Source: Lepidodermella squamata (Eukaryota; Animalia; Gastrotricha). Taken from it: a stretch of 64,000 nt of DNA. Under the pieces are notes generated by a model. That model did no database searches. It saw nothing but the letters and a program-made list of their open reading frames with translations, and had not been told where the DNA came from. The first letter of the stretch is position 1; every line of letters starts with the position of its first letter. Position numbers and translations under genes: made by a program. This document shows, in pieces, positions 2,672-58,449 of this stretch. The stretch spans positions 3,348,001 through 3,412,000 of the forward strand of contig JBLDXI010000001.1 in the NCBI GenBank assembly GCA_047495785.1, given 5' to 3'.

Positions 2672-3032
2672 ATTGTTGTGTATTTCTGGCGGCGTCGATA
2701 TAGCATATTGGCCGGTGTTTGTTGTTGGCGTTTTGTTGGTCACTTTTATAGTGTAATTGTAACTCAATTTTTTATGAACAACTGACTTGTGTAAAAACGT
2801 GCTTGTGTCTTGTTGAATAAGTCGCTATTATATGATGATTTTATTGTGTTTGTTCTCCTGCTGCCGTAATTTCTCCGTTGTAACATATTTACCAACTTTG
2901 TTTTGCCTGTAACAATCTTTTGCGCCTTAATTTTCGCTTCATCAACCTCAGGTCTTATTCCGGTCGATTTTTCATATCGAAATAAAACATGACAAAACTT
3001 GGGTTTTTATTTCATATTATTTTGACTTGATT

Positions 3033-11000: not shown

Positions 11001-12427
11001 CTAAGTCGTCGAGTGAAAACGAGCTGTTTAGCTGAGACAACGTGCGACTATCGAACACATTGGCGGGTTTATTGGCAGCAGATCCAAATCCGTTATTTGT
11101 GAAAATGTCACCAGGTGGATTGGCGTAAGTCGCATTCGGGGATGAGCCCATTTGATATGGCGATGTACTAGAAATGGGAGTTGCTCTATTTGGCATGTCA
11201 TATGTTGATTTAGAACTCGTCAACATAGATGGACTTGGCGTCGAGGCTTTGCTTTGATGAACTTCTTTGAAAATTTCATCGAAATTGATATAAGGCTCAG
11301 ATGGCGGTAGAGGTGGTGGAGCAAATTTTGGTGGCTCGTCGAATTCATGGGGGTCTGAGTAACTCGGTTTGGCAGGCGAGATTTCAAGAACGGGAGCAAG
11401 AGGCTGAGCGGGTAAAGCGCCCGGTACATTTTGATAAATCTATTCGAAATTTAATATTAAAAGCTAATTGAAAGAAAACATTCGTCAATAAACCTCTCGT
11501 TTTGGTTGATCGTAGCTTTTCCGGGCTCCATAATCATATTGACTACTGGCAGGTGCACTGCTGGCAGGCTGAGTAGTGCTATCTTCAAAAATTTCCTTGT
11601 GCATCGCCCGCCATGTCCTCGACAACGGAATATCAGTAGAAGCTGACGACTGATCCTTCTCGGGAGAGATTGCGCAGATAAACTCGATAAAACTTTTCGG
11701 AAACTGCCCAGTCTTATTATCGCCAATTCTGCAGCCGGAAAACCAATTTTCATCGACAGCTTTCAAAACTTTGACTTCATCATTGAATCGCAAGGATAGT
11801 TCGTCACCATATCTAGCATCGAAATCAGCAATAACGCGACCTTTGAAAGGAGGATTCTGCTGAGGGGCGTAAGCGTCATGTTGCTGTAATATTGAAGCTG
11901 CGTTATTATGCTGGCCGACTTCGACAACGAATGTTAGCGGGAACATCTTAAGCGGAGTTGTAACTGGCTGTAATGCCAACCGTCCTTCCCACCATTCTTC
12001 GTTTACGGGTCGCTCTCCAATGATTAAATCACCTAAAGTGACATCAACACATAAACACTTGAAGAATCATCAGCAGAGGTCTGCCTTACCTGATTTGAAC
12101 TCAAGATCACCTTCAACGCCGGTGTAAAAATCGGCGATAGCCAGGAACATCTCTTGCTCACCTTCGCGAAGTTTGAATGTCATTTCTTTCAAGTACGTAG
12201 CGGGGACAATTCCTTCATCCCCCATCACTATGTGCCTGCATTTAATCCATTCTTGGCCGATCTAGAGTAGACAAATCCAATAATACATTTTGAATACAGG
12301 AAAGATGAGAAATTACCTTTTCTAGTATTAGAACTATCTCGCCAGATCCGACCGACAATTGACCATCAGCAGTAGGATTGAAGGGATACAAGACTTTGGC
12401 AAGTTGTATAGACGTGATGCTAGGCAT
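8076..12427 (-). CDS. DNMBP: Dynamin-binding protein / Tuba-like RhoGEF (SH3 repeats, DH, BAR, SH3)
   Basis: N-terminal SH3 domains (AKVLYPFNPTADGQLSV, VIADFDARYGDELSL..ENWFSG), Pro-rich linker, DH domain (VIEELISTEESY...LLKPVQRILKYPLLL), BAR-like region (KKRQDKLLDF) and C-terminal SH3 (HDPTGQAERWFVDTGVTKGFVP). A DH-BAR tandem without PH is characteristic of the DNMBP/ARHGEF37/38 family; N-terminal SH3s favour DNMBP. Confidence 0.88.
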
Positions 12428-24538: not shown

Positions 24539-25882
24539 TTAGAAATTCGAATTGAGCAAATATTTTCGAATAACTCCATCGCGGCAAGCCGTGTAGATGT
24601 AACGGCCGTCACTGACCAGGCGTGTCACCGGCTCGCAATCCGCACCGGTCAGTTCGATAACCGGGCCTTTGTTCGCCTTCTCCGAGGCAAGTTTCGTGAA
24701 CATCGCATTTCCAACCGAATACGCTGATCCATCCGAGGAAGTAGCCCACAAACGATTATCGATGACTTGCAGGCTCAAAATCGCGCCTCGAGTACGGTTG
24801 TCGACATGAGCGACCGGCAATTCAGGTCGGCGCATGTCCAATGCGTAGATTTGACCATCCTGAGTACCGCACACGACATGGAATGGCGCAAGGTCGCCCA
24901 GGGTCGTGCAACAGTTGACAGGGGCAGTCAACTTCAGGTCGAACAACTTTTGCCTGAATTCGTCCTCAATCAAACAGCCCAAAAGTCGGCCCGACTCGCA
25001 AGCAGCCAGAACTAACTTTCCATTCGGAGTCTCGCAATTCGGCGGGCAATCAGCTAGAGCAATGCTGTTCAACGGGTAGTTCAACGCGAATTCAAGCGGG
25101 GCTAGCTCGTAAATGTGAATAGGCTGCTGGGTAGAGACGTCCCACAAACGGATAGTTCCGTCTCGAGAGCAGGACAACACATTCCGGCCTTTGTCGATGA
25201 TGGCGGTTTCGTTGATCGCACCGGCATGTCCAACCAAAGTAGCGGCGCAGTTGCCAGTATCAGCCGCCCAGACTCGGATAGTCAAATCAGCTCCAGCAGT
25301 CAAAGCAACGACACCGGATGGGAAAAATCGGCAGGAGTAAATCTCGCCAAAGTGACCTTGCAGTTGCCTCTGTTTTCATTAATAAATCAACAATTTTCAA
25401 CAAGATGTTGGCAAGCACTTACGCGAACTTCGCCAGTAGCAGTATCCCAAATGAATAACTGATCATCACAGGCAGATGAGATGCCGATTCCTCCGTTAGT
25501 AACATCGAGACCTCGAATGTACTTGGAAGACGAATGAATATTCTCGAATTGCTTAGTGACCGAAGCAAAACGCTGTTCAAGAACAGCACCGTCGCCCCAT
25601 TTGCAGGTAACATCAATTGATCCGGTGCTTTTGCGATCGAAGCGAGCCGAAAAGTCGTTGACGCTGAAGTCTTTGTTGCTCTTCTCGTTGATGTAGTCGT
25701 TCAAGACAAGAGAAGAATGAGTCCGAGTGCCGGCTGAAATAAAGCAGAGTGGTATTGGATTCTACCAAAGCAAAGCAAGCATTACCAGCATTTTCAAAAA
25801 TGGCCCAGATTTTTTCGGTCTTTTCACCGACAGAGACTGATTCCCAGTCAGGCTGCAAAATGACGCGGCCCTCAGCGTTCAT
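24539..25882 (-). CDS. PAAF1: Proteasomal ATPase-associated factor 1 (Rpn14-like WD40 protein)
   Basis: N-terminal ILQPDW..KIW, then GHFGEIYSCRFFPSGVVALTAGADLTIRVWAADTGNCAATLVGH..IIDKGRNVLSCSRDGTIRLWD, and C-terminal ELTGADCEPV..IYTACRDGVIRKY. Three exons. Confidence 0.88.
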
Positions 25883-26089
25883 GATTTAAAGTTAAAACCT
25901 ACACACAATGGAAATTATCATTAAACCAATCCATAATTATTTTTTCAACGTGCAGCGTAGTTTGGCATTTAGTGTTTCTAAGAAACTTCAACTCCGGTTA
26001 TCTTAAATCATAAATCTCGACAATTTCGATGTACAGACATCAATTAAATACAATTCACGATTCCAGGACAACTAAGAACCAGATACGAC

Positions 26090-26807
26090 TTAGTCGCGCG
26101 ATGCTTTGAGCTGCTTTTTCCGTTGACCGAACATGTGCAAATAAAGCTGAGGGAAAACTGAAAAATGGAATTAAAATTAAACCAGCGATGCGTGGCACAA
26201 TGAGCAACTTACTCGGGAAGTACATGGCGATTGCGACAATCAGAAAGTAAGGATAATAGAATGCAAAATTGTACTTGTTGGGCAAGGAAAGGCGGAATAA
26301 AGTAGCCGAAAAGGTGAGCGAATAAAGGATAGACCAAACTTCTCCAGCGACGCCAAGAGGGTAAAGGACGATGAAGAGGGTGTAGCGTAGCCATGTCAAA
26401 ATATATGGAACGCAATCGTACAGCGCAAATGCGTAGTAAGAATACCGGATAACCTCAGTGACGGACCACGCAAACAAGAACATGGGAACCGAGATGTGAG
26501 TCTGAACCTGCTTGACCGAGTAAGCAATACCCCACGTCACCAGAAGGCGAGAAAAGACTTGAAAAGCAGTTAGCACCGGGTTTGATTTGACCAAGCCGAG
26601 AGCAGCATGCAAGATTTCCATGACCGCAGCGGTTTGGAACACGAGCAGATGCCATTCGACGGCTGGGTATAGCTTGCTAAATGGAACAAGGCTGTTGTTC
26701 AAGTAAGCACGATAAGCACACCAGCAGGTCTGAGCCAAAATAATGAACCAGCCATACACAAGAACAACATTGTAGCCAACAAGGTATGCGCGCTTCAAAA
26801 ATCCCAT
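26090..26807 (-). CDS. HACD: Very-long-chain 3-hydroxyacyl-CoA dehydratase (PTPLA/PHS1 family)
   Basis: YLVGYN, FQTAAVMEILH, QVFSR, AWSVTEVIRYSYY, WLRYTLFIVLYPLGVAGE. Intron 26212-26158, last exon IFPQLYLHMFGQRKKQLKASRD*. Confidence 0.93.
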
Positions 26808-36094: not shown

Positions 36095-37260
36095 TTGCAT
36101 TAAAAACTATTCTATTATTACAAATAGCCCTACAACCTACAACGACATCATTGTTCAACGGCTATAAACTTCCTAATAATCTGGGTTTTTGAGCGTTTTC
36201 GTTCATATTGCCTTCGATATTTCAGAAAAATCTGCAAGTTTGAAGAGTCAGCCAAGTCATGAGACATGATAAATTCCTAGCATCGCAAAAAGTCAATATA
36301 TCGATTTCACACTGCTCATAACAGAGCCCACGGTTCATTCAGTTCCGCTTACTTTTATTTCCTACCACGGAAATGAATGGTAGGGAGGTACGAGATTGCA
36401 AACATCAAGTTTATAAATTTGAATCATTCGTTAAATTTTCAACTCCGCGTCCACCTGAGCTCCGAAAATTCGGCGTTAGTTCCAGCTCAATCATGCAATC
36501 AACAACCTGCCAGATTTTTGCGGCACTCGTTTTCGCGGTGAGCATTGGAGTAGTGGCATCTGACGTCTGCTTCTATAATTCGGCATTTGACAACGCTGGT
36601 CTCACATGCAAATCAGAGAATCCGATTTTCAGCTCCAAGAGGAAAATAGAATGCAACTGGACGGCTGACGCAGTTGAAAATCCGGCTGTCTTTTACACGA
36701 TCTCAATCACGCATCAGGCGTGTAAGGAACAAACACCCTGCGGACGAAATTGCAGGAAATGCTCACTGTTTGCAAACGCTTACGATGTCGCCAATGAAAC
36801 TGTGTTTGGAAGCCACTACAAGTACGATGGATCATCAGAGTTATACATAGTTAGCATTTGAATGAAGTAGAAAGGGATTTAATTAATCTTCATTTTTCAG
36901 GTTACAGTAACTCGTATCTGCGGGAATATCACGCAAGTGATAACATCACAAGTGGATGCAGGCCTGACCTTAGTTGAAGGAGGCATATTATTCATTTTCT
37001 TATCCCTGCTGACTTGCTGTACGAAGGTAATATGCTGCTGCAGAACAAGAAAGCCGTTTCCAATGGCTCCATTCGGGCAGCAGCAGATGTATTACGGCGT
37101 TTTCAACCCAACTCCGCAGCAGTACATACCTCTGAGATGACCAGGTTTATCTCGGACTTGCTGCGGAAACTGGTCCTGCTGCTGAGGAAACGGAGAAAAA
37201 ATGAATTTCAAGTGAACTACCTCTCTGAAACCCATCGGTTCGTTGGGCTGTACCAAACAC
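36095..37260 (+). repeat. Segmental duplication unit (upstream region, gene, 3' UTR), homologous to about 47350-48520
   Basis: Alignment starts at ttgcattaaaaactattc / ttgtattaaaaactattc and runs through about 400 nt of upstream DNA, both exons and the 3' UTR (gaatttcaagtgaactacctctctg). Confidence 0.9.
36493..37140 (+). CDS. Unrecognised type I membrane protein, paralog 1 (198 aa)
   Basis: Exons 36493-36849 and 36901-37140 (phase 0). Signal peptide, 8-Cys ectodomain, one TM, CCTKVICCC, tail PFGQQQMYYGVFNPTPQQYIPLR*. Confidence 0.85.
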
Positions 37261-37311
37261 CTTATCCCAGTGATCATTTTTTGTTCTGATTTAATCTTGA
37301 TACACTCTGTC

Positions 37312-37645
37312 GTCGCGTTGCGTTTGAAAGGGGCCGTTGTAGTTTTATTATTGCTGCAATAAGCTACAAAAAACTAATATGGCCCAAAATTTATATCGTT
37401 ATGCTCCTCTCGAATTGACCAGTCCAATGATGCAGGTTGTATAAACACTATTACTTTCTCAGCCATTCAAAACCGGAATTGATCATAATCGTGTTCCATT
37501 TATATTATCGCCACCAATCTACAGTATTTCCATTATTGCTATTCTCACCAACAGCAGCGCCCAATGGGAATCAGTTAATAAATTGCCGCCTTTTATTGAT
37601 CTGATGGCTCCTGCTCAGCAGACCGTTGTCAAGTGATATAAGGGT
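37312..37645 (+). repeat. Diverged inverted repeat, partner of about 46524-46857
   Basis: Shared blocks gttgcgtttgaaaggggccg, ctcctctcgaa, atgatgcaggttgta, cgcccaatggga, aattgccg in opposite orientation. Confidence 0.8.
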
Positions 37646-38663
37646 GTATGACTTTTACATAAGACTTGCAGTCATTGGAATTACTAAAATTGCGCATTTA
37701 GAATTTACAGGTTTCAGCGCCAAAAAGTTGCGCTCAGTGTGCGACTTTCAAGGGGGGGATGGGGGGATCATCCCCCCCCCCCCCCCCCCCCCAGCTCGGC
37801 GGGGCCAAACAACAAAATGAGAATTTATCCTACTGTTTTGTTAATTTTGGAAGGTTCTGGGACGTGTTTTAGTGGAAATTTTCCATAATTTTCCCGCTTC
37901 GCTCGGTTATAAGCCGAAATGACTCGTCATTTTGGCAAATACAGCAAACAAGTTTTTTCCATCCCTGGGAGCTCGGGGATCGAAGATCGCACCCTGGTTG
38001 CGCTTTTCAGTTCCCAATTTTATCCATATATTCAAGTGAAAAGTCTACCGTCGTTTGGGGTGAAATGGGCATGAAGCCAATAATTCACGATTTTTCAAAA
38101 TTTCAAAATGCCTAATATATCAATCAAATATATTATCAGCTATAGTGATCAGGGCCCCTCTTATCGCTTCATGAGAATTTGAAATTAATTTCTAGCATTA
38201 ATTGGCAGCTAAGCCAAATAAAAAGATCCATTTCCTGCTCGAGAAAAAGTATTTTTATTAAAATATTTTTCTTATTTGATTACAATTTCGGCTTCGACTT
38301 CTTTGATGAGAATGCTCAGTTAAATTTATTATTTTTGGGTCTGAGGTTCCAAGCTGCAGAAATTAAGGTGGATAACCCGCGGACAAAGTCAATTATTTCC
38401 GGCCGAACATCGTGGAATGTTCGGGAAGGCTTAGTCCTGACACTACCCTCCCTCGAAGCCGACGGCTTCCAGACGTCGCTGCTCGATTCCTATTTCCTTG
38501 GGGAGCATGGGCGGCGGTCCTCCAGGCTCGAGATCGATTGGACGCTCGTATGACCAATGTTGTGGCATAGCTAGAGCCAGGTGACTTCGAGATCTGATGT
38601 TGCAACGAGTCCTGCTGCACTCAAATTCAAACATGCTGGACCTCTGAACATTGGGGGTTATAG

Positions 38664-38830
38664 TGAATTCATTACCTAAATATTTAATTTCGTACCAAAG
38701 TCATTTAATTCAGTACCAAATCATTAAATTCATTACCAAAATGCTGAATTCCTTACCAAACCTAAAATCATTGAATTTAGTACCAAATCTATTTAATTCT
38801 GTACCAAAACTCATTTAATTCAGTACCAAC
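38664..38830. repeat. About 20-bp minisatellite (ATTTAATTCAGTACCAAA-like) inserted in the LTR element
   Basis: About 8 imperfect copies visible. Confidence 0.8.
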
Positions 38831-40864
38831 ATGGGTTTAAACCAGAAATTCATTTTATTTGATCCTTCATATTCCTACATCATCAAAATCGTCGTTTTTG
38901 CTCAAAAAGATCAAATAAACTTGTCATTCGTACTCCAGCGCGGAGCCGACTCTTTTAGGCCGGCCGACTGGGTTTTTATCATTACCCCGCTCAGTTCCAC
39001 GACCACTAGTGGTAGACGAACTAGCGGTAGTGGTACTAGGCGAAGTCGCCATCATGAAACTGAGTGCATTCGATTATGCCTGGAAGTCGGCCAACAATCG
39101 TACGCATGGCCACCCTTACTCGACAAGTTTCTTCCTTCTTAAATACACCGTTCTCTCCCCCCAAGCCATTGTCGGTTGTGCAAAAAGGCGCCCAACCTTC
39201 GTACCATCCCCTTAACGTTCCGTCCTGATACATTCGTTTGAAATGCACCAAGAAGTCACCCATGTAGGGTTTCTTGGACCATTTGGCCTGAAACAGCTTG
39301 CTCGCTGTCGAATTCAACCGAATCTTTTGCAAGTTGAACCTGTTGTAGGTCCTTTTTCACCTGGCGCCAAAGACCCTTTCTTCGCAGTGCGATAATTCTG
39401 GTCTTGCAGACCTTTTGAACATGGAACCAGCGCATATACCGAGAGCACGCGGGAATTCAGCTTCGGCCGCAGCAGTGATTCCCGGGCAACCGTCGCCCAG
39501 GACGAATCTGACGATATCTTCAAGCTCTTCAGGATCTTCGCACGTTCGAACGAGCTGATAACCCTCTGTAAAAGCAATGAATCGATTAAATGCTGGCATA
39601 AGGATTATAAATTCGATTAAAAAACCTTTCAAAGCTTGAAAAGGGCCTGATAGCACTCCTTCTCCTCCCCACTAGCAATGGCAAACATTACGGTATGAAA
39701 CTTTCTCTTTTGATCTGAAACACCGGCAACCAAAAGCGGAACGTTGTCCGGATCCCGGATTATCGCATCGGTCGCATCGGTTTGCAAATTTTTTGCAAAT
39801 CTGTTCAGAAACTTTTAATCTCACAAGGCTGATGCTTTTTCAGATTTAAAATACCGCAGTTTTTTGAGCATTTTCCTGGACGAATAACAAATCGCGAAAG
39901 GCGCGGGATCTTCTTCACCAATCCAGCGCTTGACAATGAAAGCTTTGTCTTCTTCTTCTGGCCCAGGTACTTGGGAATACGGTTCGGTGATTTCCATTAG
40001 TTCGACAGAATCGGGAGTACCCACTGCTGTGACCTTCTGGCCACTGATCGTTTTTCGCCGGTAAACCAGTGCGTTGCTGAACTGTCTCCGTCGCTGGCAA
40101 CTTGCTTTCGTGCAGCTTCTCCTTCACCGTCTTGGCTGACCAGCCTTTTCTCGCTGCTTCCATGAGCAAGTTGTGTACTGCTGGCTGGAATCGGAAAGTT
40201 TCGTTCTCAGGATTAATCAGCTGGTGATCGTGTTCAATGGCTTCATTCTCGGGCACTTCGTTCTCTTCATCGCTTGAATCGTCATCGGAAGCAGAATCAT
40301 GCTGCCTGTTCTTGTTTACATAGAAAACAGCCTGTCCGGGTTCGTCGAAATCTTGAGTTCTTGGGTTCGTGGAGTAACACGATTTTCCAACGTCGCCAGC
40401 ACGGGTGATAGTTTTCCTTGTTGGCGTAGGAGCATTTCAAGAAATAGGAAGGGTGTCTTACATTGCCTAGAAGAAGAAATGTTTGAAAAATGGGGAATTT
40501 TAGAAAGTAATTCGAAATAACCTTTGGTCAAGAAGCTATTTCACCGATTTGTTCACCGATGAAATCGAGCCGATCAATGGTAGCTTCGCATCGACCATTA
40601 AATCCAACGAATTGAGCATGGAGTTCGGTGAATTTCATTATGGAGAGATTCAGGGACTTGGTAGCTTGGTAGGAAAGGCAATTGGTAGCTACTCAATAGC
40701 AAGAGATCGTATTATCATGTAAGGAGCGGATTAAAAACGAGAAGCTGTTTGCTAGGTGTTGCCTTTATTGGAACGAGAGCAAGTAACTTTCGTACAATAA
40801 TACGATCTGAAGCTAACAAAAAGCAAAAGGTCTTTATAAATGTCTATGGAATAATCTGGAACAT

Positions 40865-40914
40865 AGAAGGTTCCAGAACATGGAAGGTTCCCGAATCGTG
40901 GAATGTTCTGGAAG
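40865..40914. promoter_or_regulatory. Three tandem heat-shock elements in the LTR U3 region
   Basis: aGAAggTTCcaGAAc (40865-79), gGAAggTTCccGAAt (40882-96), gGAAtgTTCtgGAAg (40900-14), about 25 nt upstream of the LTR TATA on the minus strand. Confidence 0.65.
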
Positions 40915-42894
40915 GCTTAGTCCTGACACCTGACAGTCCTGAAGGGGCGACGGTTGCGCAATCGGGGCGGCTTTGTTTACAGAGGGCGCGCTTATTTAAA
41001 AGGAGGGCTGCGATTAAACGAGGGCGACGTTTTACATTTTGGGGCGACAGATTTTATTTATCCGCTTTCCATAATATCTCAGCGACGGATCGTAAAACAC
41101 TGAATTTACGATTTCAGGTTGAAAGATTGATCAAAAATGATCAATATAAGGAATAAAAACACCACCCGCCGGATATCCAGGCGTTGCCAAAATAGTAACA
41201 AAACCCAAAATTATAGCCCCAGCTAATTTTTGGAGAATTATGTTTATTTTTAATCATAATTTTTTAAATAATTGCAATACTGTGCATTTGATTGCAAAAA
41301 AGCATAACAATTAGCACGCGAGTGTCATATTATTTTCTATGTGAGTAGCATTATTGTTTTCGTCACTTTTATTTGCATCTAAATCGTAGTATAAGTCGCA
41401 TATACAGTATACTAAACCGCAATGTCTCTAGTGACTGGTTTTTTTACAGTAACTGCATTTTTTGTTTTTATGGCGAATTATTTTGTAAGGGAGAAAAAAA
41501 TATCGATTCCCCCAATGCGATTTCTTGAGCTAGAATGCTTCGTCAAGAAGCAAATGGAAATATACGAATATATTTTCGAATTCCTGCGGATGGGCTTTCG
41601 AAAACTCCAAGAACTGCCTTAGTGTTTATGGTTACGCTAAGTGCCAAGTCAAACGCATGTTTTCAAAGGAAAGACGCGAATACGAAGTTTTATTTGTTTG
41701 AACCTGCATAGCCAGGTTGCAGGCTGTACCCTGAATGCACTGTTTTTTTAAGAAAAATGGCAAAACTTGCAGTGATAAGGCTTAATTCCGGTAATCGTTT
41801 GTAGCCTTAGAATACCTGTTTATATTCCCATTCATGGCGTAACAAGTTACCGGAAAATTGAGCTATCGATGTAACTAGCATCGGGAAATTATATAATAAT
41901 ATGTACTCTACGAATCACGTGGCTTATTTACCGTCATAATTTATTTCAAGTCATTAATTATCAGATATTCAGAAAGTTAGTTATTTAACGCATAGTTCTT
42001 CTTATCACTCAATTCATCGGCTATATTACTTCGATTTCACTGTCCAGGCCTCCGGGGATAGTAAACTTCTTAAAACCCCATTTTCACTTGTCAAAGGTTT
42101 TCCCGAGGGGGCAATATATTTAATATTCCCAGGGGAATTCATTCCCAACGTAATTATAGCACCTATTTTCAAATTAGCAAAAAAATGCACCAAGGGTGCA
42201 TTAAGGTGGGGGCTGTGATCGAAAAGTTCGATGACAGCCCCAATCACATACAGCGTGTCTCGGAAGTCGCGCAACCGACCGGGATTGTGAAAAAGGAATT
42301 AGTTCCCGAGTAAGCTAATTCCTGAGTAGTTCTTGAGTAATGAATTCTTGAGTAAGCTTATCAATTGTTGCAATATCCAACGAGGAAAGTTATTCATCTC
42401 AACATCGAAAACTTTGTGTCACTAAATAACGTTAATGCTCTCAAGCGAAATATACGAATGGAGTTTAGTGACTTCGATTGAAGTTTGAAAATGTAAATGG
42501 TACGGTTGCGCAACATTATGAGACACGCTTAGACGATTTGCCGACAGCTGAGAAGCGCTTCGTTTTAGTGAACTTAACTTTAAGTTCAACTAGTAAAATC
42601 GTTGCGGTAACCAGCTGTCAGCCGACTCTAACAATCAATTTCCAAGCGGCAGATATTCAATAGCTTAAATAGAATCTCACATATTACTTATGTATAATGA
42701 AAATTAAACTGTTTGTTCGCTGAATTAAACTGAATTGCAGATGAAACTATGAAACTGTGCTATTGGATCTAAACGACTTTTTAAGAGTAAAATTATCGCG
42801 ACGAAAAAATAATGCCATGGGAAAACAATGCTTTATTTTGCTCATTCGATTGTTTTTTTAACACATGTAGGCCATGCTTATATCAACGAAGACC

Positions 42895-43061
42895 AGCGGA
42901 CTTTTTAGGGTCGTCGCCAAGGTGGTCTACGCAGATCACCTGGGGCTGGTTCATCTTCAGCATGATGCATGTTTCGATTTTTCTATTTTTGAAATGTGCT
43001 TCTCGAGCGTTCCGCTGACAAAGTTTATTGCAAGCCTTAGCGGACTTTTTAGGGTCGTCGC
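42895..43061. repeat. Direct repeat AGCGGACTTTTTAGGGTCGTCGC, two copies about 143 nt apart
   Basis: Identical 23-mer followed by weaker similarity (..CTGGGGCT / CCGGGGCT). Confidence 0.7.
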
Positions 43062-43853
43062 TCAACTGCTCAAATCAGAACAGCCGGGGCTAAGAGTGCT
43101 TGCTGCATAAAACTTTGTACAGAAAAGTTTGCGAAAAGACAAAATAAAGCTAGCTTTGGCAGCGAATATTGTTATTAATCCTCAACGGCACTATCTTCTA
43201 AAGTCACGAACATTTATCTGTGCAATATCTGAAATATGAAGGCGATCATCAATAGTCAGTTTAATAGAGACATTTGCTATTCAAGCTATTCAGCTAATTT
43301 TTTGAACAATTTTGTCAATGTCGATCTTAGATGGTTAAAGGCACCTCAGCAAGGGTGAACAGTAGTTATAAGTAATATCAACAGATCCTGAATAATTATG
43401 CCAAGGAATCTACCGCTTGTCTATGATTTCAGATAAACTAAAAAATATATATGTAGGACGATGATGGCTAAGACACCGCCATCGGTTCGACTGTATTCCC
43501 AATCCCAATTTACATATTTACATGTTTCTATCCCCGCGCATTTTTTATTCCCAAACTGCCAAGAAACTGCCACAATGGCCTATTTTCCAATAAAAATGGA
43601 TCTATTTGCATACTATTTGCGAAAATTGTCGAGGCCACAAAGCTGATATGCCGTGATGACTAATATTCAAGCCTGCCAATAACCGCTTTTCAACCATAAC
43701 ATGTGCCAATAATGTGTGATGGTAATTAACTAATTAATTGAAGAAAGAATAGAATAGAAATAACTGGCGTAAAACTACACATGAAAATATGGTCCGAAAT
43801 CAGGGGAGCTCCCCTTAATTTATCGTTATTTCAGTGTTTTGATTTAGCGTTTA

Positions 43854-44748
43854 CCGGGGAGAGGTACAATTTTGACAAGTACAAGTTCAACAACTTTTTT
43901 CTACCTAATGGCCTACCTGCGGTTGACTTCCTAAAATTCTGGAAAAATGTCTAACAAATCCCTTGGCTCCTGTAGAATAAGGGTATCGATTTTGTTTTCC
44001 CGAATTTGATTCCATTATTGACTGCTGATTTTCGGAATCGAACCCTCGAAAAAACCTAAAATCACCTATCTGGATCTCTTCACCTGGGCGGTTTTAGATT
44101 AAATTTTTTATACCAATATAAAGCTGGCGTTTAGCTGGTAATAATTGAGGTGAGAGCAGTAAATTCTAAAGAGCCAGTTCCAGGTAAATTACCTGCAAAG
44201 TAGCGATTTTGAAGGTACAATATTGACAACTCGTCAGTACAATTTTGACAGCAGGTACAACTCAAAAAACTACCTTGAAAGACTTCTTAATCGATGTTTA
44301 AATGGTACTTCGATGAGGCCTGTCTCATGTAGATAATTCTAGAATTTGTTCCCAAATTCTAGCACCGTCCGTTTATTTTTGGTGAAGTTACAAAGCAACA
44401 TCTTAAAAACAGCGTTTTAACACAACAAATTCTAACATCAAATAATTTCGTTTTAATTTTCACCGCGCAAACGATGAATCACTGCTGACGCTAGATGATC
44501 AAGTTGAAAAAGTGGCATTACCATAGCGTTGTCAAAGTTGTACCAGCTTGTCAACATTGTACCTTTCGTTCGGGCCATTTTTCTCAAGTGAATTACCTGG
44601 ATCAGGCCGTGGTAAAATTACAACAATTACGCCCAGGACAAGGGGGTTCTAACGGTGTAAAAATTTGGAAAGAATTCACCTCAATTGATTTTCTGGAATT
44701 TTTTAAAAATTTGTACCTTTTTGTTGTCAAAATTGTACCGTTCCCCGG
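43854..44748. mobile_element. TA-flanked MITE (Tc1/mariner-pogo type), 895 bp
   Basis: TA|CCGGGGAGAGGTACAATTTTGACAA ... TTGTCAAAATTGTACCGTTCCCCGG|TA, with internal repeats of GTACAATTTTGACA. A related solo end lies at 46415-46437. Confidence 0.85.
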
Positions 44749-45245
44749 TAACTTCTCCAGAGTTGCGTTTTTTATTGAAACCGAGGTGCCATTGATCAGC
44801 GTTGTGGTCAATTTTTCGGCGAGCTTCGCAACAGAGAAAGCATAATCGGCACGTCTATCATGAACTGACCGGCTCGGATGGCCGGTCAAGGTCGATCAGA
44901 AAAGACAAATCCCCGCGTGGATTAAGAACATTCGGCCGCGGCTAAATCGCGACATGGCTGTAATTAATTTACGTAACATGTGACCCTCGTTAATTTCTGA
45001 CCCCATGCCTTAAGAGCTAATTTCAGCAAAACTACGCAGAAAAGCATTTTTAATTTTCTCCGCAATGATCGAACATGAAATCGATTTTAAAAAAAATCGA
45101 TAAATTTGGCAAAATTTATGAAAATCCAAAGCGTTTTAGGCGATTTCTGACCATTAATTTGAATCCAAACTTGCCGACAAGTTCGAATGGGTTGTAAGAC
45201 AGTTCAGCAGATCTTGGTTCAGCAACGTCAGTTCAGCAGTGATAT

Positions 45246-45930
45246 TTGAGCAGGAGACACTTCAGACCTACCTGCGGATCAGGTAGGCTCAGGCTAGAGG
45301 CCAGGGTCGGTGAACATGAGATGTTCAAGCTCGAGCCAACGCTGACGGACAGGAGCGTCGGCAGCTGTAGGGGTACATCGGAGCCCCAACTTAGTGGAAC
45401 CATCGAATCCACAAAATCGCTATTGGCTGGACTACAATTTGTTGAAGGACGCGATTGATTAGATTTTCGAGAATCTTGGCGTGTTATTTCTTGAACAGAA
45501 AGAAAATCCTGAATTTCCCGGGTTTGATTCGCGGTGGCCGAGCATCGTTTTTTCTGAGATTTCTTTTACTTTTCAAGAAATAACATGCCAAGATGCTGGA
45601 AAATCTAATCAATCGCGTCCTTCAACAAATTGTAGTCCAGCCAATAGCGATTTTGTGGATTTGATGGTTCCACTAAGAAAGTGAGTACGCTTGAGTGCAA
45701 TGCGCTTGAGGTTCCGGCTTTCTCCTCATTCCAAGGACAAAAAGCACTCGCCTACAGAGGTGCTGTTCTATTTAACCTTCTGCCACAATAAGAGGCTCAA
45801 AACGCGCAAACTGCCCATGCCTGTCGGCAAGCCACCTACAAGTTCTTACTGACGAGCGGGCCCTTCGAATTCAGCAACAAATAGACCACGGGACATTGAA
45901 ATGGAACTGAAATAATAGGACGAGATTCTG
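45246..45930 (+). mobile_element. Decayed CR1/L2-type LINE 3' fragment interrupted by a MITE
   Basis: 45735-45785 encodes GQKALAYRGAVLFNLLP, resembling the G-x-x-x-F-x-Y-R-G-x-x-x-W-N-x-L-P motif at the C-terminus of CR1/L2 ORF2. Stops are present and boundaries are approximate. Confidence 0.6.
45390..45677. mobile_element. Foldback MITE, family A copy 2 (complete, 288 bp)
   Basis: CTTAGTGGAACCATCGAATCC...GGATTTGATGGTTCCACTAAG, near-perfect inverted arms of about 105 nt, AA on both flanks. Confidence 0.9.
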
Positions 45931-46005
45931 AACGGACAATTGTGATATGCCCATTTTTTTTCTTCAACTTTGCTCGAGCTTTTCCTCACTGCATTCAGAC
46001 TCGCT

Positions 46006-46412
46006 AAATAATAATAATAATAATAATAATAATAGTGAGCAACTCGTCGGCGAGTTACAATAGGGGTGTAGAATTGAGCCGTCAGGTAGGGTCAGCGGAC
46101 CGGTCGAGCGAGGCGGCTGGTGCCGGTCGAGCTTTCGCAGACGCACCCAGAACGTAAAGGCAGCGGACTTCGACGAGGGCAGCGTTGATTGCGCGGCGGT
46201 ACAAGCGAAGGATCGGTTCGCCAAGCTTAGGGGTCAGGATCGCACCGAGAAGGTGCCACAGTGTACGCTGGTGGCCCTTGCGATCGGCCCAACGCTCAAC
46301 GCCAAGCAGCGATATCTCAAAGCGTGTGGAATTGCTGAAGTGATCACTCTCCAGCCGATCGCCGATGGTGACAGATCCACTGAGCAGCTGCCGGGCAGCA
46401 TCCTTTACCATC
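46006..46412 (-). mobile_element. GC-rich ORF end, short 3' UTR and (TAT)n tail: probable non-LTR retrotransposon 3' end
   Basis: Open frame ends at 46082; about 50 nt later a (TAA)n run at 46006-46033 (+ strand). Cut on its 5' side by a MITE terminus. No diagnostic motif recognised. Confidence 0.45.
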
Positions 46413-46979
46413 CGGTCAAAATTGTACCCTCCCCCGGTAAGTCTCATGCGAGAACCCAGTCACAGACTTCACCCGCCGCATTTGGTTGGTGAATATTTGC
46501 TTATGTATTGGTATGATAAATTCACCCTTTCTCATTTGACCGTGATCTGCTTAGCGGGAGCCGTCAGATCGATCAAAAACGGCAATTCATTATCCGACTC
46601 CCATTGGGCGGAACTGATGGCAAGAATATTAATAATAGAAATATTGTGAATCTGTATAAATAATAAATAAAAAACACTGTTAAAATTAAATCCAGGTTTG
46701 AATGACCACGGAAGCGATTCTGTTATTACAACCTGCATCATTCGATAAATCATTTCGAGAGGAGTATAATGATATAAAATTCGGGCCATATTCGGTCTTC
46801 AGATTTTATTGTATCGATAATAATAACATAGCGGCCCCTTTCAAACGCAACGTGACGCTGTTGTGATTTATATACTTTAAGTCCTGATACTGAAATGAAC
46901 CTGATTGAATACATTTTATTTTTGCGCGTCAAAGAGGAAAATAAGAAAATAAAAACTCCGTATTTATTATTTATTTATT

Positions 46980-47339
46980 ATACTCCGTATTAGACTCCCA
47001 TGCGATTTTCCCATTTGTGACCTCAGGCACTTTGCCACAGCCAAGCTTCTCCTCTTTGACGCATTTGACACTTTGACACCTGATTGAATACATACTGCTG
47101 GGATGCTGTTTTGTTTTATTACACTACTGTTTCGATTTTTACTATTACCTATCATTATTATATATACACATTGATGTGTATTTCTGATCCTAATTCTACA
47201 ACTTTGTTTCTTCTACAACACTTTTCCTGCCCTAAATGTGATTCTGTCCTGCAATTATATGTCGTTTTCCGTGTATACTTTGTCAAGCTTCCCTCTCTTC
47301 TCTCTTGGGTGTAATAGCTTCTAAATAAATAAATAAATA
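46980..47339 (+). mobile_element. Retroelement 3' UTR with (TAAA)n tail
   Basis: End ttgtcaagcttccctctcttctctcttgggtgtaatagcttc(TAAA)n is homologous to the minus-strand end at 49541-49610, ttgtcaagctgccctcttctgggcgttaaagctta(TAAA)n. Confidence 0.6.
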
Positions 47340-47757
47340 CCCTTGCTGATTTGTATTAAAAACTATTCGATTATCACAAAAAGCCCTAAAACGACATCAT
47401 TATGACTTGAAAATTTCTTCTGATAATCTGCGGCTTTTTAGCGTTTTCGTGCATAGTGCATAGCCTTCGACATTGCACACATTTGTCAAAATATTCCAAG
47501 TTTGAAGAACCATGAGACATGCGAGGTTCCCAACATCGCAAAAAGTCAATATATCGATTCCATACAGCTCATAACGCAGACCCCACGGTTCATTCAGTTC
47601 CGCTTACTTTTATTTCCTACCACGGCAATAAATGGTAGGTAGGTACGAGATTGCAAACATCAAGTTTATAATTTAAAAATTTGAATCATTCGTTAAATCT
47701 TCAACGCCGCGTCCACCTGAGCTCCGAAAATTCGGGGGCGTTAGTTCCAGCTCAATC

Positions 47758-48415
47758 ATGCAATCAACAACCTGCCAGATTTTTGCGGCACTCGTGTTCG
47801 CGGTGAGCTTTGGAGTAGTGGCATCTGACGTCTGCTTCTATAATTCGGCATTTGACAACGCGGGTCTCACATGCAAATCAGAAAATCCGATTTTCAGCTC
47901 CAAGAGGAAAATAGAATGCAACTGGACGGCTGACACAGTTAAAAATTCGGATGTCTCTTACACGATCTCAATCACGCATCAGGAGTGTCAGGAAAGAACA
48001 CCCTGCGGGCGAAATTGCATGAAATGTGCACTGTTTGCCAACTCCTACGATGTCGCCAGTGAAACAGTAAATAGAAACTACTACAAGTATGATGGATCAT
48101 CAGAATTTTACCAAGTAAGCATTTGCTTTCATGAAATCAATTATGGTTTTTCAATTCATCTTCTATTTTCAGGTTACAGTAACTCGAATCTGCGGGAATA
48201 TCACGCAAGTGATAACATCAAAAGCGGATGCAGGCCTGACCTCACTTGAAGGACTCATATTTTTACTTATTATTGGATTCATTCTGCTCTGCTGTTTCAC
48301 GAAGGCATGCTGCTGCAGACCAACAAATCCGGTTCCTAGGACTCCATTCGGGCAGCAGCAGATGTATTATGGCGTTTTCAACCCAGCTCCGCAGCAGTAC
48401 ATACCTCTGAGATGA
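47758..48415 (+). CDS. Unrecognised type I membrane protein, paralog 2 (199 aa)
   Basis: Exons 47758-48114 and 48173-48415. Same intron position and Cys pattern as paralog 1; tail YYGVFNPAPQQYIPLR*. Confidence 0.85.
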
Positions 48416-49540
48416 CAATCAGCGGTTTAACTCGGTCTTGCTGAGGATACGGAGACAAATGAATTTCAAGTGAACTACCTCTCTGGAACCCCTTTGTTCG
48501 CTGGGCTCTACCAAACTCGCTCGGGGTTTCAGATCACGGGAAATGTCATTTACTATATGACTATAGAATAATTCCTTATTTCCTATGAAGCTTTCAAAGA
48601 TTTGATTTTAATTTTCTTTTGCAACCATAAAGCTAGTTTTAAGACTTGAACCTTGAACTAGCTCTATGGTTGTAACCAGTTGTCTTCATAATACATTTTC
48701 GGTTTTCAATGGAGGCGTTTTAGAGTAATCCGAGCGCAGAACTCTTTGAATAAATATTTGCTTAGGATGGAGACAAGTTGAAGAAGGTGCGGTGAATTTT
48801 TTGCTTATATTACCTTCCGAAGATCATTAGCAAAAGCTGCAAAAGTACATTATTACTATCAACTATCAACCTCACGTGATATTCAGTAAAAATGTATTAT
48901 GAAATCATCCCGCATCAATCTGGTTTCTATTAAAAATTATTTACCAGGCTCCGGCCTGCCAATATTCGCTCACGTCCAGACCATATCCCAAACCAAGTAG
49001 TGTTGGTACCATACTTTTCACAACGTCCTGCTTTAATAACGATTTTATGATCAAATGGGTTTTCGGCTGCAAAAATTATACGTGACAGTAGAATATTAGA
49101 TGGCTATGAGTTGGTTACAAGTACTTGTCGTTTTTAGAACATTTCCCTGCTTTCTGTAGTATTTGAGCTTACTGTATCATTCAATTTTATCCCCGCTCTG
49201 GTAATCTCTCCTAAAAAGGCGCTTTCCATCTCAATTCCATGGCCTGAGCACACGTCTTTCATTTCATTTTAAGCGAAGTGGTTGCATCTGAAGTAATTTC
49301 TCGGGGAAGCGATGTGCTTCCGATCTCGGGGGACGACGCTCTGCATTTGAGATTGCTGGTTGGTGATTTGGGCCACGGCGCACGGGTTGCTGCTTAAATC
49401 GAACGAACAAATTCCAATAGTGAACGTACTAGGGCTTACTCATGACTCATGACTCAGTGTTTTGCGTGGTGTTGAAAGCAAACGTTCTAATTTTTATGAA
49501 AATGTCATTGATGATTTTGTCGCATTATATGCATAGAAGG

Positions 49541-50040
49541 TTTATTATTTATTTATTTATTTATTTATTTATAAGCTTTAACGCCCAGAAGAGGGCAGCT
49601 TGACAAGAGGTAATTTGAAAGTGAAACATGTAATTGCAGGACAGTTTACAGATGAATAGGACATTGGCAAATGATAACAAAAATTGCTTTTTACTAGTGC
49701 AGATAGTGTAGTAGTGATGTAACAACAATCATCTGTCTGAGTGTACATATGGGTAGTGCGTAAGTATTGAATGGAAAAGCTGTATAGAACTTAGTTCATT
49801 ATTCATTCCAGCTAAAAATTTGTTTAATGAAAATTGCAATGTTTGCTATGAACATCACGCGAAAATAATAGGTTATTTTTCCATGTCAGTGGTAGTCCAT
49901 CTTTAAGTTCCGTAGAACTGGGGAATCAACATAAGAGTTTGAACGTTTTCTCTCCTCAATCGAACGCACCATAGAATTCTTCTATTTTCTCTTCTTGGGG
50001 GATTTTATTCAGAATGTCTTTTATCGGGAAAAAATTTGAC
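49541..50040 (-). mobile_element. Retroelement 3' fragment with (TAAA)n tail, related to 46980-47339
   Basis: (TTTA)n at 49541-49572 plus the conserved terminal 35 nt. The far boundary is approximate. Confidence 0.55.
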
Positions 50041-50604
50041 TGTAGCGGAACGCGGAACCAAACCTCATTTTAGATAAGCCAAAGGTTGCTTTTCCAATAT
50101 TTCTACAAAGTTAAGGCAATGTATGAATTATATAGTGAAGAGCCCGTCTTTTACAGAAATTTACACTGAAATTTAAAGATTTTTTATTTGAAATTAGGCT
50201 AAATTAGGCTGTTCAATCATGAAATCTTTGCATGCTTCGAAAAGGTGTTTTAGGCCCAAAGATTTGGTTCCGCTAAGAGTAAGACCCCTTTTTCATCCCT
50301 GGGTTGGGGCGGCTTACGCCTATCTTAGGTATCCTTATTCACCAGCTGAAATGACAACGTATATTCGTTTTAATAGGTGATCGTTAAACGCTGAAAAATA
50401 ATGTAATTCGGCAATACAAAACATTTTTTCTCACACAGACACCAAGTTTCTTGGCTTCCTCTTTAAAAAATGTTCACATTCAATTCAATTTCTGGGTATG
50501 AAAAGGTTACCAAAGAAGCTATAAATTAGCTTGAAGGTCCTGCTTCAGCCCTGCAACAAATTAATTTTGCTTATGCAATTCTTCAGAAAATCTGCGTTTT
50601 AATT

Positions 50605-51339
50605 ATGCAACTATTTCTTTGGGAAAACGTTGCACTCCTACTTTTCGGGCTTGGTCTTGTAACAATTCACGGCCAAGATTGCAGCTTATCTTCAGCCTTT
50701 GATGCTGACGGAGGTCTTTCTTGCAAATCCGAAAACCCTATTTTTAGTATTACAAGAAAGGTGGAATGTAGTTGGACCGACGATGCCGTGAAGAGTCCGA
50801 AAGTAATATACAAGGTATCAGTCTCGCACCAGGTTTGCACAAAGCAACGTGTCTGCGGGAAGCACTGCCGCGAATGCGTATCTTCTAATACCGCTTACGA
50901 TGTCTCGAACGAGACAATTCAAGGCAATTATTACAAATACGATGGTTCAGCGCAGGTATATCAGGTGAGATTTCAATGAGAAATAATTTTGTTATAACTG
51001 GGTGGTCCCGTGCTTTCCTAGGTAACTGTTCTTAGAGTATGCGATAATTTCACGTCATCAGCAACGGACGAAGTCAACGCCGGGTTAACCGCCGCTGAAG
51101 GAGGAATAATCGCGGCAATAGTTATTGTGTTCATTCTCCTCATTATCACTCCTGTAATCATTTGTTGCTGCAAGAAAGTCTGCTGCTTCGCCCCAAAGAA
51201 AACTTTTCCAGTGATCCCATTCGTGCAACAACATATATACGGCGGAGTGTACAATCCTGCAAATCAGGGCGCGGTTATAGCAACAACAGCCAATCAAAAC
51301 TCTGTCTCACCCGTTGAAAAAACAATATCGAAAGAATGA
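50605..51339 (+). CDS. Unrecognised type I membrane protein, paralog 3 (225 aa, more divergent)
   Basis: Exons 50605-50964 and 51022-51339. Conserved SAFD..GL.CKSENPIFS..RK.EC.WT.DAV, YDV.NET...YYKYDGS, VTV.R.C, AGLT..EG, CCCKKVCC, PFVQQHIYGGVYNP. AATAAA at about 51385. Confidence 0.85.
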
Positions 51340-51414
51340 GAGGCAGGATGCTAATCGTAGTTTTTGTTGTAAACGTGACTTTTTAATAAATATCTCCTTA
51401 TATTTAATTAATTA

Positions 51415-51753
51415 CCGTCTCGGAACAAAAACCATGACATTTGTTTTTTTTCAAACGTTGATGAACCCCTGACATTTATTTCGGGCCTGACATTTATTTA
51501 TCCGAACCAATGAGTAACTGCCTAGGTAACCAAAATGGTATACATTTCCCTGAGTTTCTACGTATTTTGACCCAAAATTGGTCCCTGACCTTTCTAAATG
51601 CTAAGAGTAGAAATTAGCTCCATTCAGAATGGCTATAATGAACTCATTAGTGATCTTCGGTATTGTCCCCCTATTGACCTGACATTTATTATTTCGAACG
51701 ACCTCTAACCTCTGACATTTATTTGAGGCTGACATTTTTTTCGGGCAGTACGG
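51415..51753. mobile_element. TA-flanked MITE-like element with repeated TGACATTT motif
   Basis: TA|CCGT...ACGG|TA ends and six copies of (C)TGACATTT. The left TIR is degenerate. Confidence 0.55.
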
Positions 51754-54028: not shown

Positions 54029-55545
54029 TTAAACATAAGTCGTTTGCTGTTTAGACGCTGCAAAACTAGACGAGCTACTATTTGGATTGCTAGTTGACGC
54101 ATTTGGGCGGAACCTGAGCGCTAGTAACACAGCACACAACACAGCAGGCAGCGAAAACACGAATGACGTCGCTAACAGCATCCAATTGCTGTTAGTACGG
54201 TTATACGCTGAGTGATTCACAGAAAACATCATTCCAAACACAGCTAATAGCGCCAATGGGAAGCGGAAAATAGCCAGAGCGCCTGAAATCGCGATAGGAC
54301 TGGGTGTTGGGTTTGAGGCCACTAATACGCTGACTCGGGCTTGTTCCATCGAAGGAAAGTAAAATCCTAAAAATTCAACAAATTAGATAACAAATCAGCA
54401 ATTTTTACGCATAACTTACCAACAGCGATTTGAGAGATCACTAAGAATAACAATAAAAAGTCATTCGACCATCTGAATGACGCAATCACAGTCATGGCCA
54501 GTAGTGAAAGGCTGAGCACGTGAGAAGATAGGGCCAGTGAAACGAAGGGCGAAACTCGACCCCATCCATCGATCAACTTATTACCAAACCAGCCGCATGC
54601 AAAGCCAAGCATCAAAGCTGAGAATACCACTCCCAGCGGGATGGCCGTTGATAGATTTGATGGCTGCAATAGAGGGGTCCATACGAATATTAGCAGGTAA
54701 ACGTTTGCTTCTGTCAGCGCTTGAAGCGATCCCAAGAGGAATAAATTTTTATCTGACCGCAAAGCCTCAACGCCATCTGCGCAAACTTGCGACATTCGCA
54801 TTTGACCTGATCCTTTATTATCAGTCCAAAATCTCATGACGTAAGCCACGCCAATCAGCAAAGGAATTATTCCGAAAATTGAAGGCGCGACTGGGCCGAG
54901 GCGCAAAAACTGGCTAAGAAAATCGCCGACGATACCGGCAACGACGGCAAAAACGTTGCTGATGTAGGTAGATTTCGTGAATGTAACAGCAAGCCATTCC
55001 CTCGGAAAATCAGCATCAACATGGGATGTTCCATACCAAGCCGACAGGGCCATAAATAAGACGGAAGAGGCACTTCCTTGAAGAATTCGACTGCCGATAA
55101 GCACGCCGTAGTCTGAAGAGAGTTTCATCAACGCTGAAATACAGCATGCCAGTGAAGACAAAATGATCAGCAGGCATCTTGAGACATAATCTGGCAGCAG
55201 TTGACCAAATGTGCCACATATCACCGACGAAACAAGTCCGGCAGCGTAAATGGCTGCGATTTGATGAGTTTCGAAACCGTATTTGGCGTAAAGATCATAA
55301 AGATACGGTGCTGCAAAAATGATTGGAATTAAAGATTGTATTTTAACGCGGTATACATTACCTTGAAGCCAATCTGCAAGGATGAACATTGCGAATGGTA
55401 TGAGATACGATCGCTGAACCCCACTGAAGTTTGGATTTGTGAGCTTGCTAACAGAAATAATGTTTCTGTAGTAGCCCAAGTGAAGTCCTGCACACAGGAC
55501 GAATACCAAAAAGAACAGGAAATAAGTGAACTCGTTAAACAGCAT
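54029..55545 (-). CDS. MFSD5: Molybdate-anion transporter / MFS domain-containing protein 5
   Basis: QRSYLIPF...ADWLQ|APYLYDLYAKYGF, RILQG.ASSVLF..LSAWY..H..FPREWL..TF, GSLQALTE..YLLIFVWTP.L, IPLGVVFSALM, IFRFPL. Three exons. Confidence 0.88.
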
Positions 55546-56976: not shown

Positions 56977-58449
56977 ATGGAAGACCTGGAAACGAAAATT
57001 CTCGGTGCGGTTGATGCACTGGGTTCTGTGAACACTGTGAAGTTGTCCAGTGATTGGAATGTTGATCATCAAAAAGTTGTTGGTGCGATGAAAAGTATTC
57101 AATCCTATGGTGATATAATCACTGCGGACCCGTCTCAAATCAAATCATGGGAATTGACTGCAGAAGGTCAAGAAGTCGCAGACAACGGCTCTCATGAGTT
57201 TCGCGTATTTAACAGCATTCCAGAAAGCGGTATTAACCAAGACGATGTGATTAAGTTGTTTTCATCTGCTAAAATTGGAATAAGCAAAGCTTTAGCTGAA
57301 AAATGGATTCGTCTCGAAAAGGGCAATCCTCCAAAGCTGTTCAAAGTCGCAACTTCTGCTGAAGATAAGACTGCCGATGTATTGCGAAAAATTAATGCAG
57401 ACCACGAGTCAGTACCGGAGAAAGAGAAGGCGGATTTAAAGAAGCGAAAGCTTATCCAAGAATCAAAAACCACCACTTTCACAATTACCAAAGGCGCGAA
57501 TTTTACGATTAAACTCGCCAAACAAGAAACGGAGCTGACCCCTGAAATGATTGCCTCCGGATCTTGGCGCACTACTCATTTCAAGCCGTACAATTTGAAT
57601 GCACTCGGTGTACCTCCTCAGGCAGGACACTTGCATCCGCTATTGAAAGTGAGAGCTGAGTATCGCCAAATTTTCCTCGAAATGGGTTTTACCGAAATGC
57701 CGACTAATAATTTTGTCGAAAGTAGCTTTTGGAATTTCGATGCCTTGTTCCAGCCTCAGCAACATCCTGCTCGTGATGCTCATGACACTTTCTTCTTATC
57801 TGACCCGGCGAATTGTTCAACATTTCCCGAGGAGTACCTTGAAAAGGTGAAGAAAGTCCACTCGGAAGGTGGCTATGGTTCTACTGGTTACAAGTACAAT
57901 TGGCTGAGGGAAGAAGCAGCGAAAAATGTGTTGCGCACACACACGACTGCCGTTAGTGCTCGAATGCTGTATGCCATTGGTCAACAAAAAGAGTTCAAGC
58001 CAGTTCGTTTGTTCAGTATGGACAGAGTTTTCCGTAACGAAACACTGGATGCTACGCATTTGGCCGAATTTCATCAGATTGAGGGTGTTGTTGCAGATCG
58101 TGGGCTCAATTTAGGCCATTTAACTGGCTTGGTCACTGAGTTCTTCAACAAACTTGGAATCAGGGAGCTCCGTTTCAAGCCTACTTACAACCCGTACACA
58201 GAGCCTAGTATGGAGGTTTATAGTTACCACCCTGGCTTGAAAAAGTGGGTTGAGCTCGGCAATTCAGGCATTTTCCGGCCTGAGATGTTGCTACCCATGG
58301 GACTTCCGCCAGATGTGAACGTAGTTGCGTGGGGCTTTGGGCTTGAACGGCCCACTATGATTAAATACGGCATTGATAACATCCGTGATTTGGTTGGAAA
58401 CAAAGTGAACTTGCAAGTGATCCAAGACAACCCGATATGCCGACTGTGA
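56977..58449 (+). CDS. FARSA: Phenylalanyl-tRNA synthetase alpha subunit (cytosolic), single coding exon
   Basis: [75 protein letters not shown]. Confidence 0.98.

Follow-up and report, generated by a model that had tools for sequence, protein, structure and literature searches.

A three-copy family of predicted type I membrane glycoproteins in the gastrotrich Lepidodermella squamata

A 64,000-nucleotide stretch of the genome of the gastrotrich Lepidodermella squamata (assembly GCA_047495785.1, contig JBLDXI010000001.1, positions 3,348,001 to 3,412,000, forward strand; 'the window', in whose own numbering all coordinates are given) carries three same-strand paralogous genes, here called copies 1 to 3. 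With moderate confidence, we read all three as functional genes for lineage-restricted, non-catalytic type I membrane glycoproteins, which would combine a disulfide-rich, all-beta ectodomain with a tail suited to palmitoylation and to sorting or docking. The initial annotation of this DNA had described three same-strand paralogs with one common phase-0 intron and one architecture, and our gene models, tblastn searches and alignments bear this out. When each spliced protein was searched against the whole window by tblastn, the matches were the three loci only, at E values of 1e-42 to 1e-132, and the next match had an E value of 0.3; given this gap, chance falls far short of explaining the similarity, and the family is real. 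The same searches found no fourth copy or pseudogene in the 64 kb. The gene models are as follows.

Copy 1 exon 1: 36493-36849, plus strand; predicted signal peptide (residues 1-23) and the greater part of the ectodomain, with 7 of the 8 conserved Cys.
Copy 1 intron: 36850-36900, plus strand; 51 nt, GT..AG.
Copy 1 exon 2: 36901-37140, plus strand; end of the ectodomain (VTVTRIC and an NIT glycosylation site), AGLTLVEG, transmembrane (TM) segment, CC..CCC, PFGQQQMYYGVFNP tail and stop.
Copy 1 protein: 198 residues, two exons.
Copy 2 5' untranslated region (UTR): 47684-47757, plus strand; 74 nt, from the leftmost cDNA contig start.
Copy 2 exon 1: 47758-48114, plus strand; covered by cDNA contigs with 0 mismatches.
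Copy 2 intron: 48115-48172, plus strand; 58 nt, GTAAGC..TTTTCAG.
Copy 2 exon 2: 48173-48415, plus strand; stop codon included.
Copy 2 3' UTR: 48416-48771, plus strand; 356 nt, with AATAAA at 48749-48754.
Copy 2 protein: 199 residues, two exons.
Copy 3 exon 1: 50605-50964, plus strand.
Copy 3 intron: 50965-51021, plus strand; 57 nt.
Copy 3 exon 2: 51022-51339, plus strand; longer TM segment (~22 residues) and a tail 26 residues longer.
Copy 3 protein: 225 residues, two exons.

The phase-0 intron (51-58 nt, GT..AG) lies at the same codon in all three paralogs, where it cuts a conserved Y-x-VTV segment just before VTV. Its donor is weak in copy 1 (ATA followed by GTTAGC) as compared with copies 2 (GTAAGC) and 3 (GTGAGA). 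In alignments with copy 1, copy 2 is 84% identical in exon 1 and 70% identical in exon 2, and the corresponding values for copy 3 are 49% and 46%. All three proteins share a layout of N-terminal hydrophobic leader (the predicted signal peptide), ectodomain, AGLTxxEG motif, one TM segment, CC..CC(C) cluster and tail, which supports the type I receptor-like layout first proposed for them; every motif named at that stage is present and invariant in alignments of the three copies. The expected eight invariant ectodomain cysteines are also there (copy-1 residues 26, 39, 54, 77, 83, 87, 90 and 126 in the three-copy alignment), although the ectodomain itself is ~122 residues long (residues 24-145) rather than about 110. 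A C-x5-CG-x2-C-x2-C cluster is part of this set, and the eighth Cys is encoded by exon 2 together with the last strand or strands of the ectodomain. Further invariant ectodomain motifs are CKSENPIF, ECxW, YKYDGS, Y-x-[IV]-S and Y-x-VTV, and an N-x-T at residue 128; two other N-glycosylation sites are each missing from one copy. Strand-like alternation is evident in LTCKSE, IECNWT, FYTISIT, LYIVTVT and ITQVITS. The hydrophobic span, with a best 19-residue Kyte-Doolittle mean of 2.4-3.4, is 8-9 residues shorter in copies 1 and 2 than in copy 3. At its inner face, all copies carry a CC..K..CC(C) cluster, followed 5-10 residues later by an invariant P-x-x-P-F, which opens the invariant tail motif set PxxPF-x-QQ-xx-Y-x-GV-[FY]-NP; a pattern search identified an invariant YxxPhi in this tail (YYGV or YGGV). 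Pattern searches found neither PPxY nor WSxWS in any of the three proteins.

These features suggest how the proteins could work. First, cleavage of the signal peptide after residue 23 would leave ~122 residues outside the cell as a single N-glycosylated, all-beta module locked by disulfides; its most likely fold would be a seven-stranded sandwich of the FN3 type that resembles domain 1 of the class I cytokine receptors and has the four-Cys knot C-x5-CG-x2-C-x2-C placed mid-ectodomain. Second, the CC..K..CC(C) cluster at the inner membrane face could be S-palmitoylated. Finally, the short tail, which has no enzyme domain, would act through linear motifs, namely the invariant PxxPF and the Y-x-G-V (YxxPhi) with the NP that follows it, and these could bind sorting adaptors, as in AP-2-type endocytosis, or docking proteins. 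Such a protein would serve as a binding or accessory subunit that takes an extracellular partner and, through its tail, is sorted or recruits a signalling partner.

Transcripts from at least one paralog, whose absence the initial annotation had named as grounds for doubting its reading, were found: copy 2 occurs in spliced form in a cDNA-type run. The copy 2 locus is present in two public runs, one from 2024 (X1) that behaves as genomic DNA and one from 2015 (X2) that behaves as cDNA. We read X2 as cDNA-like because the SMART IIA oligo appears as a loose end, and its contigs lie over exons and not over intergenic DNA. On copy 2, X2 contigs with 0-1 mismatches cover 47684-48116 and 48188-48771. 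One contig of 131 nt loses its fit at 48116, two letters beyond the predicted donor, and the first letters of exon 2 match these two as well; two other contigs that start at 48173 bear loose front letters resembling the last part of exon 1, and the intron is therefore excised exactly at the predicted junction. The final contig stops at 48771, 17 nt past the AATAAA, giving an mRNA of ~1.03 kb. Copy 2 is thus transcribed and spliced as predicted. The annotated start codon is supported as well, because the in-frame ATG that lies upstream in copy 1 is changed in copy 2 and followed there by a stop codon, and because the leftmost cDNA contig, which starts at 47684, contains no ATG before 47758.

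For copy 3, X2 holds low-depth pieces only (share of words 0.09). X1 contains a second set of contigs over 50643-51206 that is 90-95% like copy 3, and the copy-3-like pieces in X2 share variant letters with this second set (for example, at 50745, 50751, 50752, 51085 and 51090). The second sequence seems to be a divergent allele of copy 3 or a further gene elsewhere in the genome and, given the shared letters, seems to be expressed, if weakly. Upstream of copy 3, TTCTTCAG, a strong acceptor-like sequence whose last letter is 50586, comes after an out-of-frame ATG at 50573. This acceptor-like sequence could be a trans-splice site that removes the upstream ATG, if the animal uses spliced-leader trans-splicing.

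No family library or sequence search recognizes the three paralogs, in agreement with their initial description as an unrecognised family. Searches of Pfam with the six exon products at E values up to 10 returned no meaningful family; the sole row, a His1 capsid match (E 0.044), is TM-like and not meaningful. Word-indexed protein searches with copy 1 exon 1 and with the tail alignment found no relatives. An exhaustive profile search (hidden Markov model) of 1.84 billion representative proteins with the mature exon-1 alignment gave a single match, a planctomycete 1390-residue repeat protein with a dockerin, which we reject as spurious because its score sums five weak repeat matches. In JGI metagenomes, 162 patterns matched and none was confirmed, and the only PDB sequence profile match, a ferredoxin (E 0.31), is a chance one. 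The searched protein collection lacks this genome's own proteins, as an exact look-up with three neighbouring ones showed. Poorly sampled phyla commonly yield orphan families and, because this phylum has been sampled so little, the lack of relatives is only weak evidence of true novelty. On our best reading the family is lineage-restricted, seen so far only in L. squamata. On present evidence, the three genes form a clean orphan family that is expressed, of the kind expected in large numbers in such a lineage, useful for genome annotation and as a target for structure determination.

The initial annotation had also likened the ectodomain to an FN3 or cytokine-receptor-like beta-sandwich, a comparison that gains a little weight from protein language-model features and none from Pfam, and for which AlphaFold2 produced no usable model. 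In ESM-Atlas features, the nearest cluster is that of the IL2RB/IL3RB/IL4RA N-terminal domains of vertebrate class I cytokine receptors both for copy 1 (0.90, 182 shared features) and for copy 3 (0.90, 178 shared features), and most other family-bearing matches are also cytokine-receptor families. Over the three queries, the IL2RB_N1/IL3Rb_N/IL4Ra_N/EpoR clusters score 0.87-0.90 with 167-182 shared features. AlphaFold2 models of the mature exon-1 part are all-beta but of low confidence, with unusable predicted local distance difference test (pLDDT) values of 50.5 with copy 1 first and 45.0 with copy 3 first; the exon-1 product used as input leaves out half of the presumed F strand and the whole G strand. 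Read directly, C39-x14-C54-x-W56, FYTISIT and LYIVTVT correspond plausibly to strands B, C and F in a sandwich of the FN3 type. From the sequence and the low-confidence models, the likeness to FN3 (PF00041) lies in a length of ~100-120 residues, an all-beta prediction, an early-strand Trp and a late Tyr-x-V-x-V. In contrast, no fn3 profile matches, and the paralog module would be heavily disulfide-bonded, unlike most FN3 domains.

Several points weigh against the picture of three working receptor-like proteins. Palmitoylation, endocytic sorting and ligand binding are proposed from motifs alone. Copy 1 has the weak GTTAGC donor, and the spliced transcripts identified are those of copy 2. For copies 1 and 2, the Golgi or endosomes are as possible a location as the cell surface, because their hydrophobic span is short and holds a Lys. 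With its signal peptide removed, copy 2 matches the cytokine-receptor cluster only in second place (0.87, 168 features), after an unrelated bacterial cluster (0.92). Moreover, the ESM recognition value of 2125-2149 falls under the tool's reliability line of 2300, and the high ESM scores are for this reason weak evidence, to be taken as a lead.

Might the paralogs nevertheless be true, very divergent homologs of class I cytokine receptors? Each would then be a minimal one-domain chain in which a D1-like module binds a helical cytokine-like ligand and the membrane-proximal PxxPF acts as a Box1 that holds a JAK-type kinase. Like the D1 domains of these receptors (IL2RB_N1 PF18707, IL3Rb_N PF21460, IL4Ra_N PF09238, EpoR_lig-bind PF09067), the paralog module directly follows the signal peptide of a type I protein and contains a Cys pair ending in C-x-W as well as strand-like Y-x-[IV]-x-[IV] and Y-x-V-x-V segments, and by language-model features all three queries (for copy 2, the form lacking the signal peptide) lie close to the D1 clusters. 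The D1 signature of class I cytokine receptors is C-x9-10-C-x-W, which the invariant C39-x14-C54-x-W56 of the three copies resembles, although with a longer spacing. No cytokine-receptor D1, D2 or fn3 profile in Pfam matches any exon product at E values up to 10, no PDB sequence matches, and the language-model lead lies under its reliability line. Cytokine receptors pair D1 with D2, whereas the paralogs have one domain; no second FN3-like domain was found in the ~122 residues between signal peptide and TM segment, which have room for one. D1 domains contain 4-6 Cys, as against eight in the paralogs with their C-x5-CG-x2-C-x2-C knot. Cytokine receptors have WSxWS and Box1/Box2, whereas the paralogs lack WSxWS, show no clear Box1/Box2 and have tails of only 35-60 residues, and the invariant P-x-x-P-F after the Cys cluster differs from the canonical Box1 PxP. 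We regard true homology as distinctly unlikely. If it held, these proteins would be one-domain receptor chains of a stripped-down helical-cytokine/receptor system in a gastrotrich; to our knowledge, no such system is known in this spiralian phylum. More broadly, if the ectodomain proved to be a new disulfide-knotted sandwich of the FN3 or cytokine-receptor D1 type, it would add a minimal type of receptor from a phylum that has hardly been studied and would offer a handle on gastrotrich cell-surface signalling.

A different role would place the paralogs in the endoplasmic reticulum, Golgi or endosomes as Shisa/CYYR1-like trafficking adaptors that control the maturation or turnover of other receptors. 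The short hydrophobic span of copies 1 and 2 would suit an internal membrane, and the overall plan of a small single-pass protein that is Cys-rich on its lumenal side and ends in a short tail of Pro/Tyr linear motifs is shared with Shisa (PF13908), CYYR1 and WBP1/VOPP1. Beyond the Shisa-like resemblance noted by the initial annotation, membership of that family is not supported. Neither the Shisa N-terminal Cys-rich domain (PF13908) nor related models matched in Pfam at E values up to 10, the Cys spacing is another one, the paralogs carry a juxtamembrane CC..CC, and they lack the PPxY that serves Nedd4-type ligases. Their ectodomain is also three times the size of the Shisa N-domain, strand-rich and equipped with conserved N-glycosylation sites. 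We consider an adaptor of this type unlikely and continue to favour a receptor-like binding or accessory subunit.

Copies 1 and 2 are a young duplicate pair. The duplicated segment is ~1 kb long (36258-37258 and 47511-48516, 83-95% nucleotide identity), and the flanks beyond it are unrelated. The conserved leading part is the following.

Copy 1 5' flank: 36258-36492, plus strand; 94% identical to the copy 2 5' flank (47511-47757).

Because the identity of this flank (94%) exceeds that of the intron (72%), it is likely to be either a constrained promoter with 5' UTR or a gene-conversion tract. A part of this flank (36322-36419 in copy 1, 47577-47674 in copy 2) contains the short palindromic sequence CCTACCA..TGGTAGG together with a TATA-like stretch, rich in A/T, that immediately precedes the first cDNA contig, and is a candidate shared promoter.

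The coding changes between copies 1 and 2 are unevenly spread. Residues 24-59 show no non-synonymous and 2 synonymous changes, whereas residues 60-147 show 26.5 non-synonymous and 9.5 synonymous differences, a ratio of non-synonymous to synonymous rates (omega, or dN/dS) of 0.83; within the latter, omega is 0.6 for residues 60-119 and 2.4 for residues 120-147, the last value coming from only 7 changes. Over the whole ectodomain dN/dS is 0.63. The TM core is almost wholly rewritten, the C-terminal motif is untouched, and omega is near 1 across TM segment and tail. With such small numbers and an omega below 1 overall, the copy 1/2 comparison makes no statistical case for positive selection. After duplication, the N-terminal third would thus have been kept constant, and divergence would have affected the remaining ectodomain and the TM segment, a pattern that suggests either changed partner specificity or decay of copy 1. 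By contrast, dS is saturated between copy 3 and copies 1 and 2, with an ectodomain dN of 0.35, and the retention of every Cys and motif despite this distance points to long-term purifying selection on the family.

These comparisons bear on two further explanations. One is that the paralogs are young orphan genes with little or no function, one copy of which is decaying; the failure of every search to find relatives, the weak copy 1 donor and the omega near 1 in TM segment and tail of copies 1 and 2 would all fit. However, copy 3 is old and still keeps 8/8 Cys, the glycosylation site and every motif, and copy 2 yields a spliced transcript with polyadenylation at a canonical site, so that we hold this explanation to be very unlikely. 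The other, raised in the initial annotation, is that the locus serves self/non-self or immune recognition and diversifies by tandem duplication among mobile elements. The genes are indeed in tandem with transposon debris between them, and the residues that differ between copies 1 and 2 are concentrated in the two omega segments given above, 60-119 and 120-147. Nevertheless, the 64 kb contain no more than three copies, the read depth gives no sign of a large family, and the ectodomain as a whole has an omega below 1. L. squamata is, moreover, a microscopic and reportedly clonal freshwater animal in which no role for allorecognition is known. A recognition locus is the least probable of the readings considered here, and the preferred one remains a small family of receptor-like membrane glycoproteins.

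The family lies in an island at ~33-52 kb of the window, flanked by ordinary genes.

RhoGEF-BAR protein: 9136-11226, minus strand.
WD40 protein and PTPLA/HACD dehydratase: 24539-26807, minus strand.
WDR35/IFT121: 29490 to ~32945, plus strand; upstream of the island.
MFS_5 transporter: 54367-55545, minus strand; downstream of the island.
PheRS-alpha (phenylalanyl-tRNA synthetase alpha): 56977-58449, plus strand; a single 490-residue open reading frame, downstream of the island.

The GC content of the window is 38-48%, in keeping with the 43% of the published assembly; the study behind that assembly sequenced another organism too (PMC11660948), in line with the pattern of the runs. Describing the island as transposon-rich, as was done initially, is fair but modest, since what we find is one decayed fragment, a pair of inverted arms and two very high-depth repeats, which establish the description only in part. 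The fragment is a run of short broken open reading frames between copies 1 and 2 (39357-40256, minus strand) with a Mutator-like element (MULE) transposase match at 39629-39787 (Pfam E 0.004, below the curated cut-off), and looks like a decayed, MULE-like DNA transposon. Inverted arms of 333-339 nt, 74-75% complementary (37311-37646 and 46523-46857), enclose 8.9 kb that includes this debris. One possibility is that the armed stretch is an ancient Mutator-like element, bounded by long terminal inverted repeats, whose insertion site lay between copy 1 and copy 2; the outer ends of the arms showed no exact target-site duplication. The two repeats, at 49515-49796 and 51348-51600, reach a summed contig depth of 800-3300 in X1, as against ~55 for single-copy sequence (15-60x), and also occur in X2. 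Finally, a 117-nt inverted repeat (45390-45506 and 45561-45677), 93% complementary around a 54-nt loop, forms a hairpin like that of a miniature inverted-repeat transposable element.

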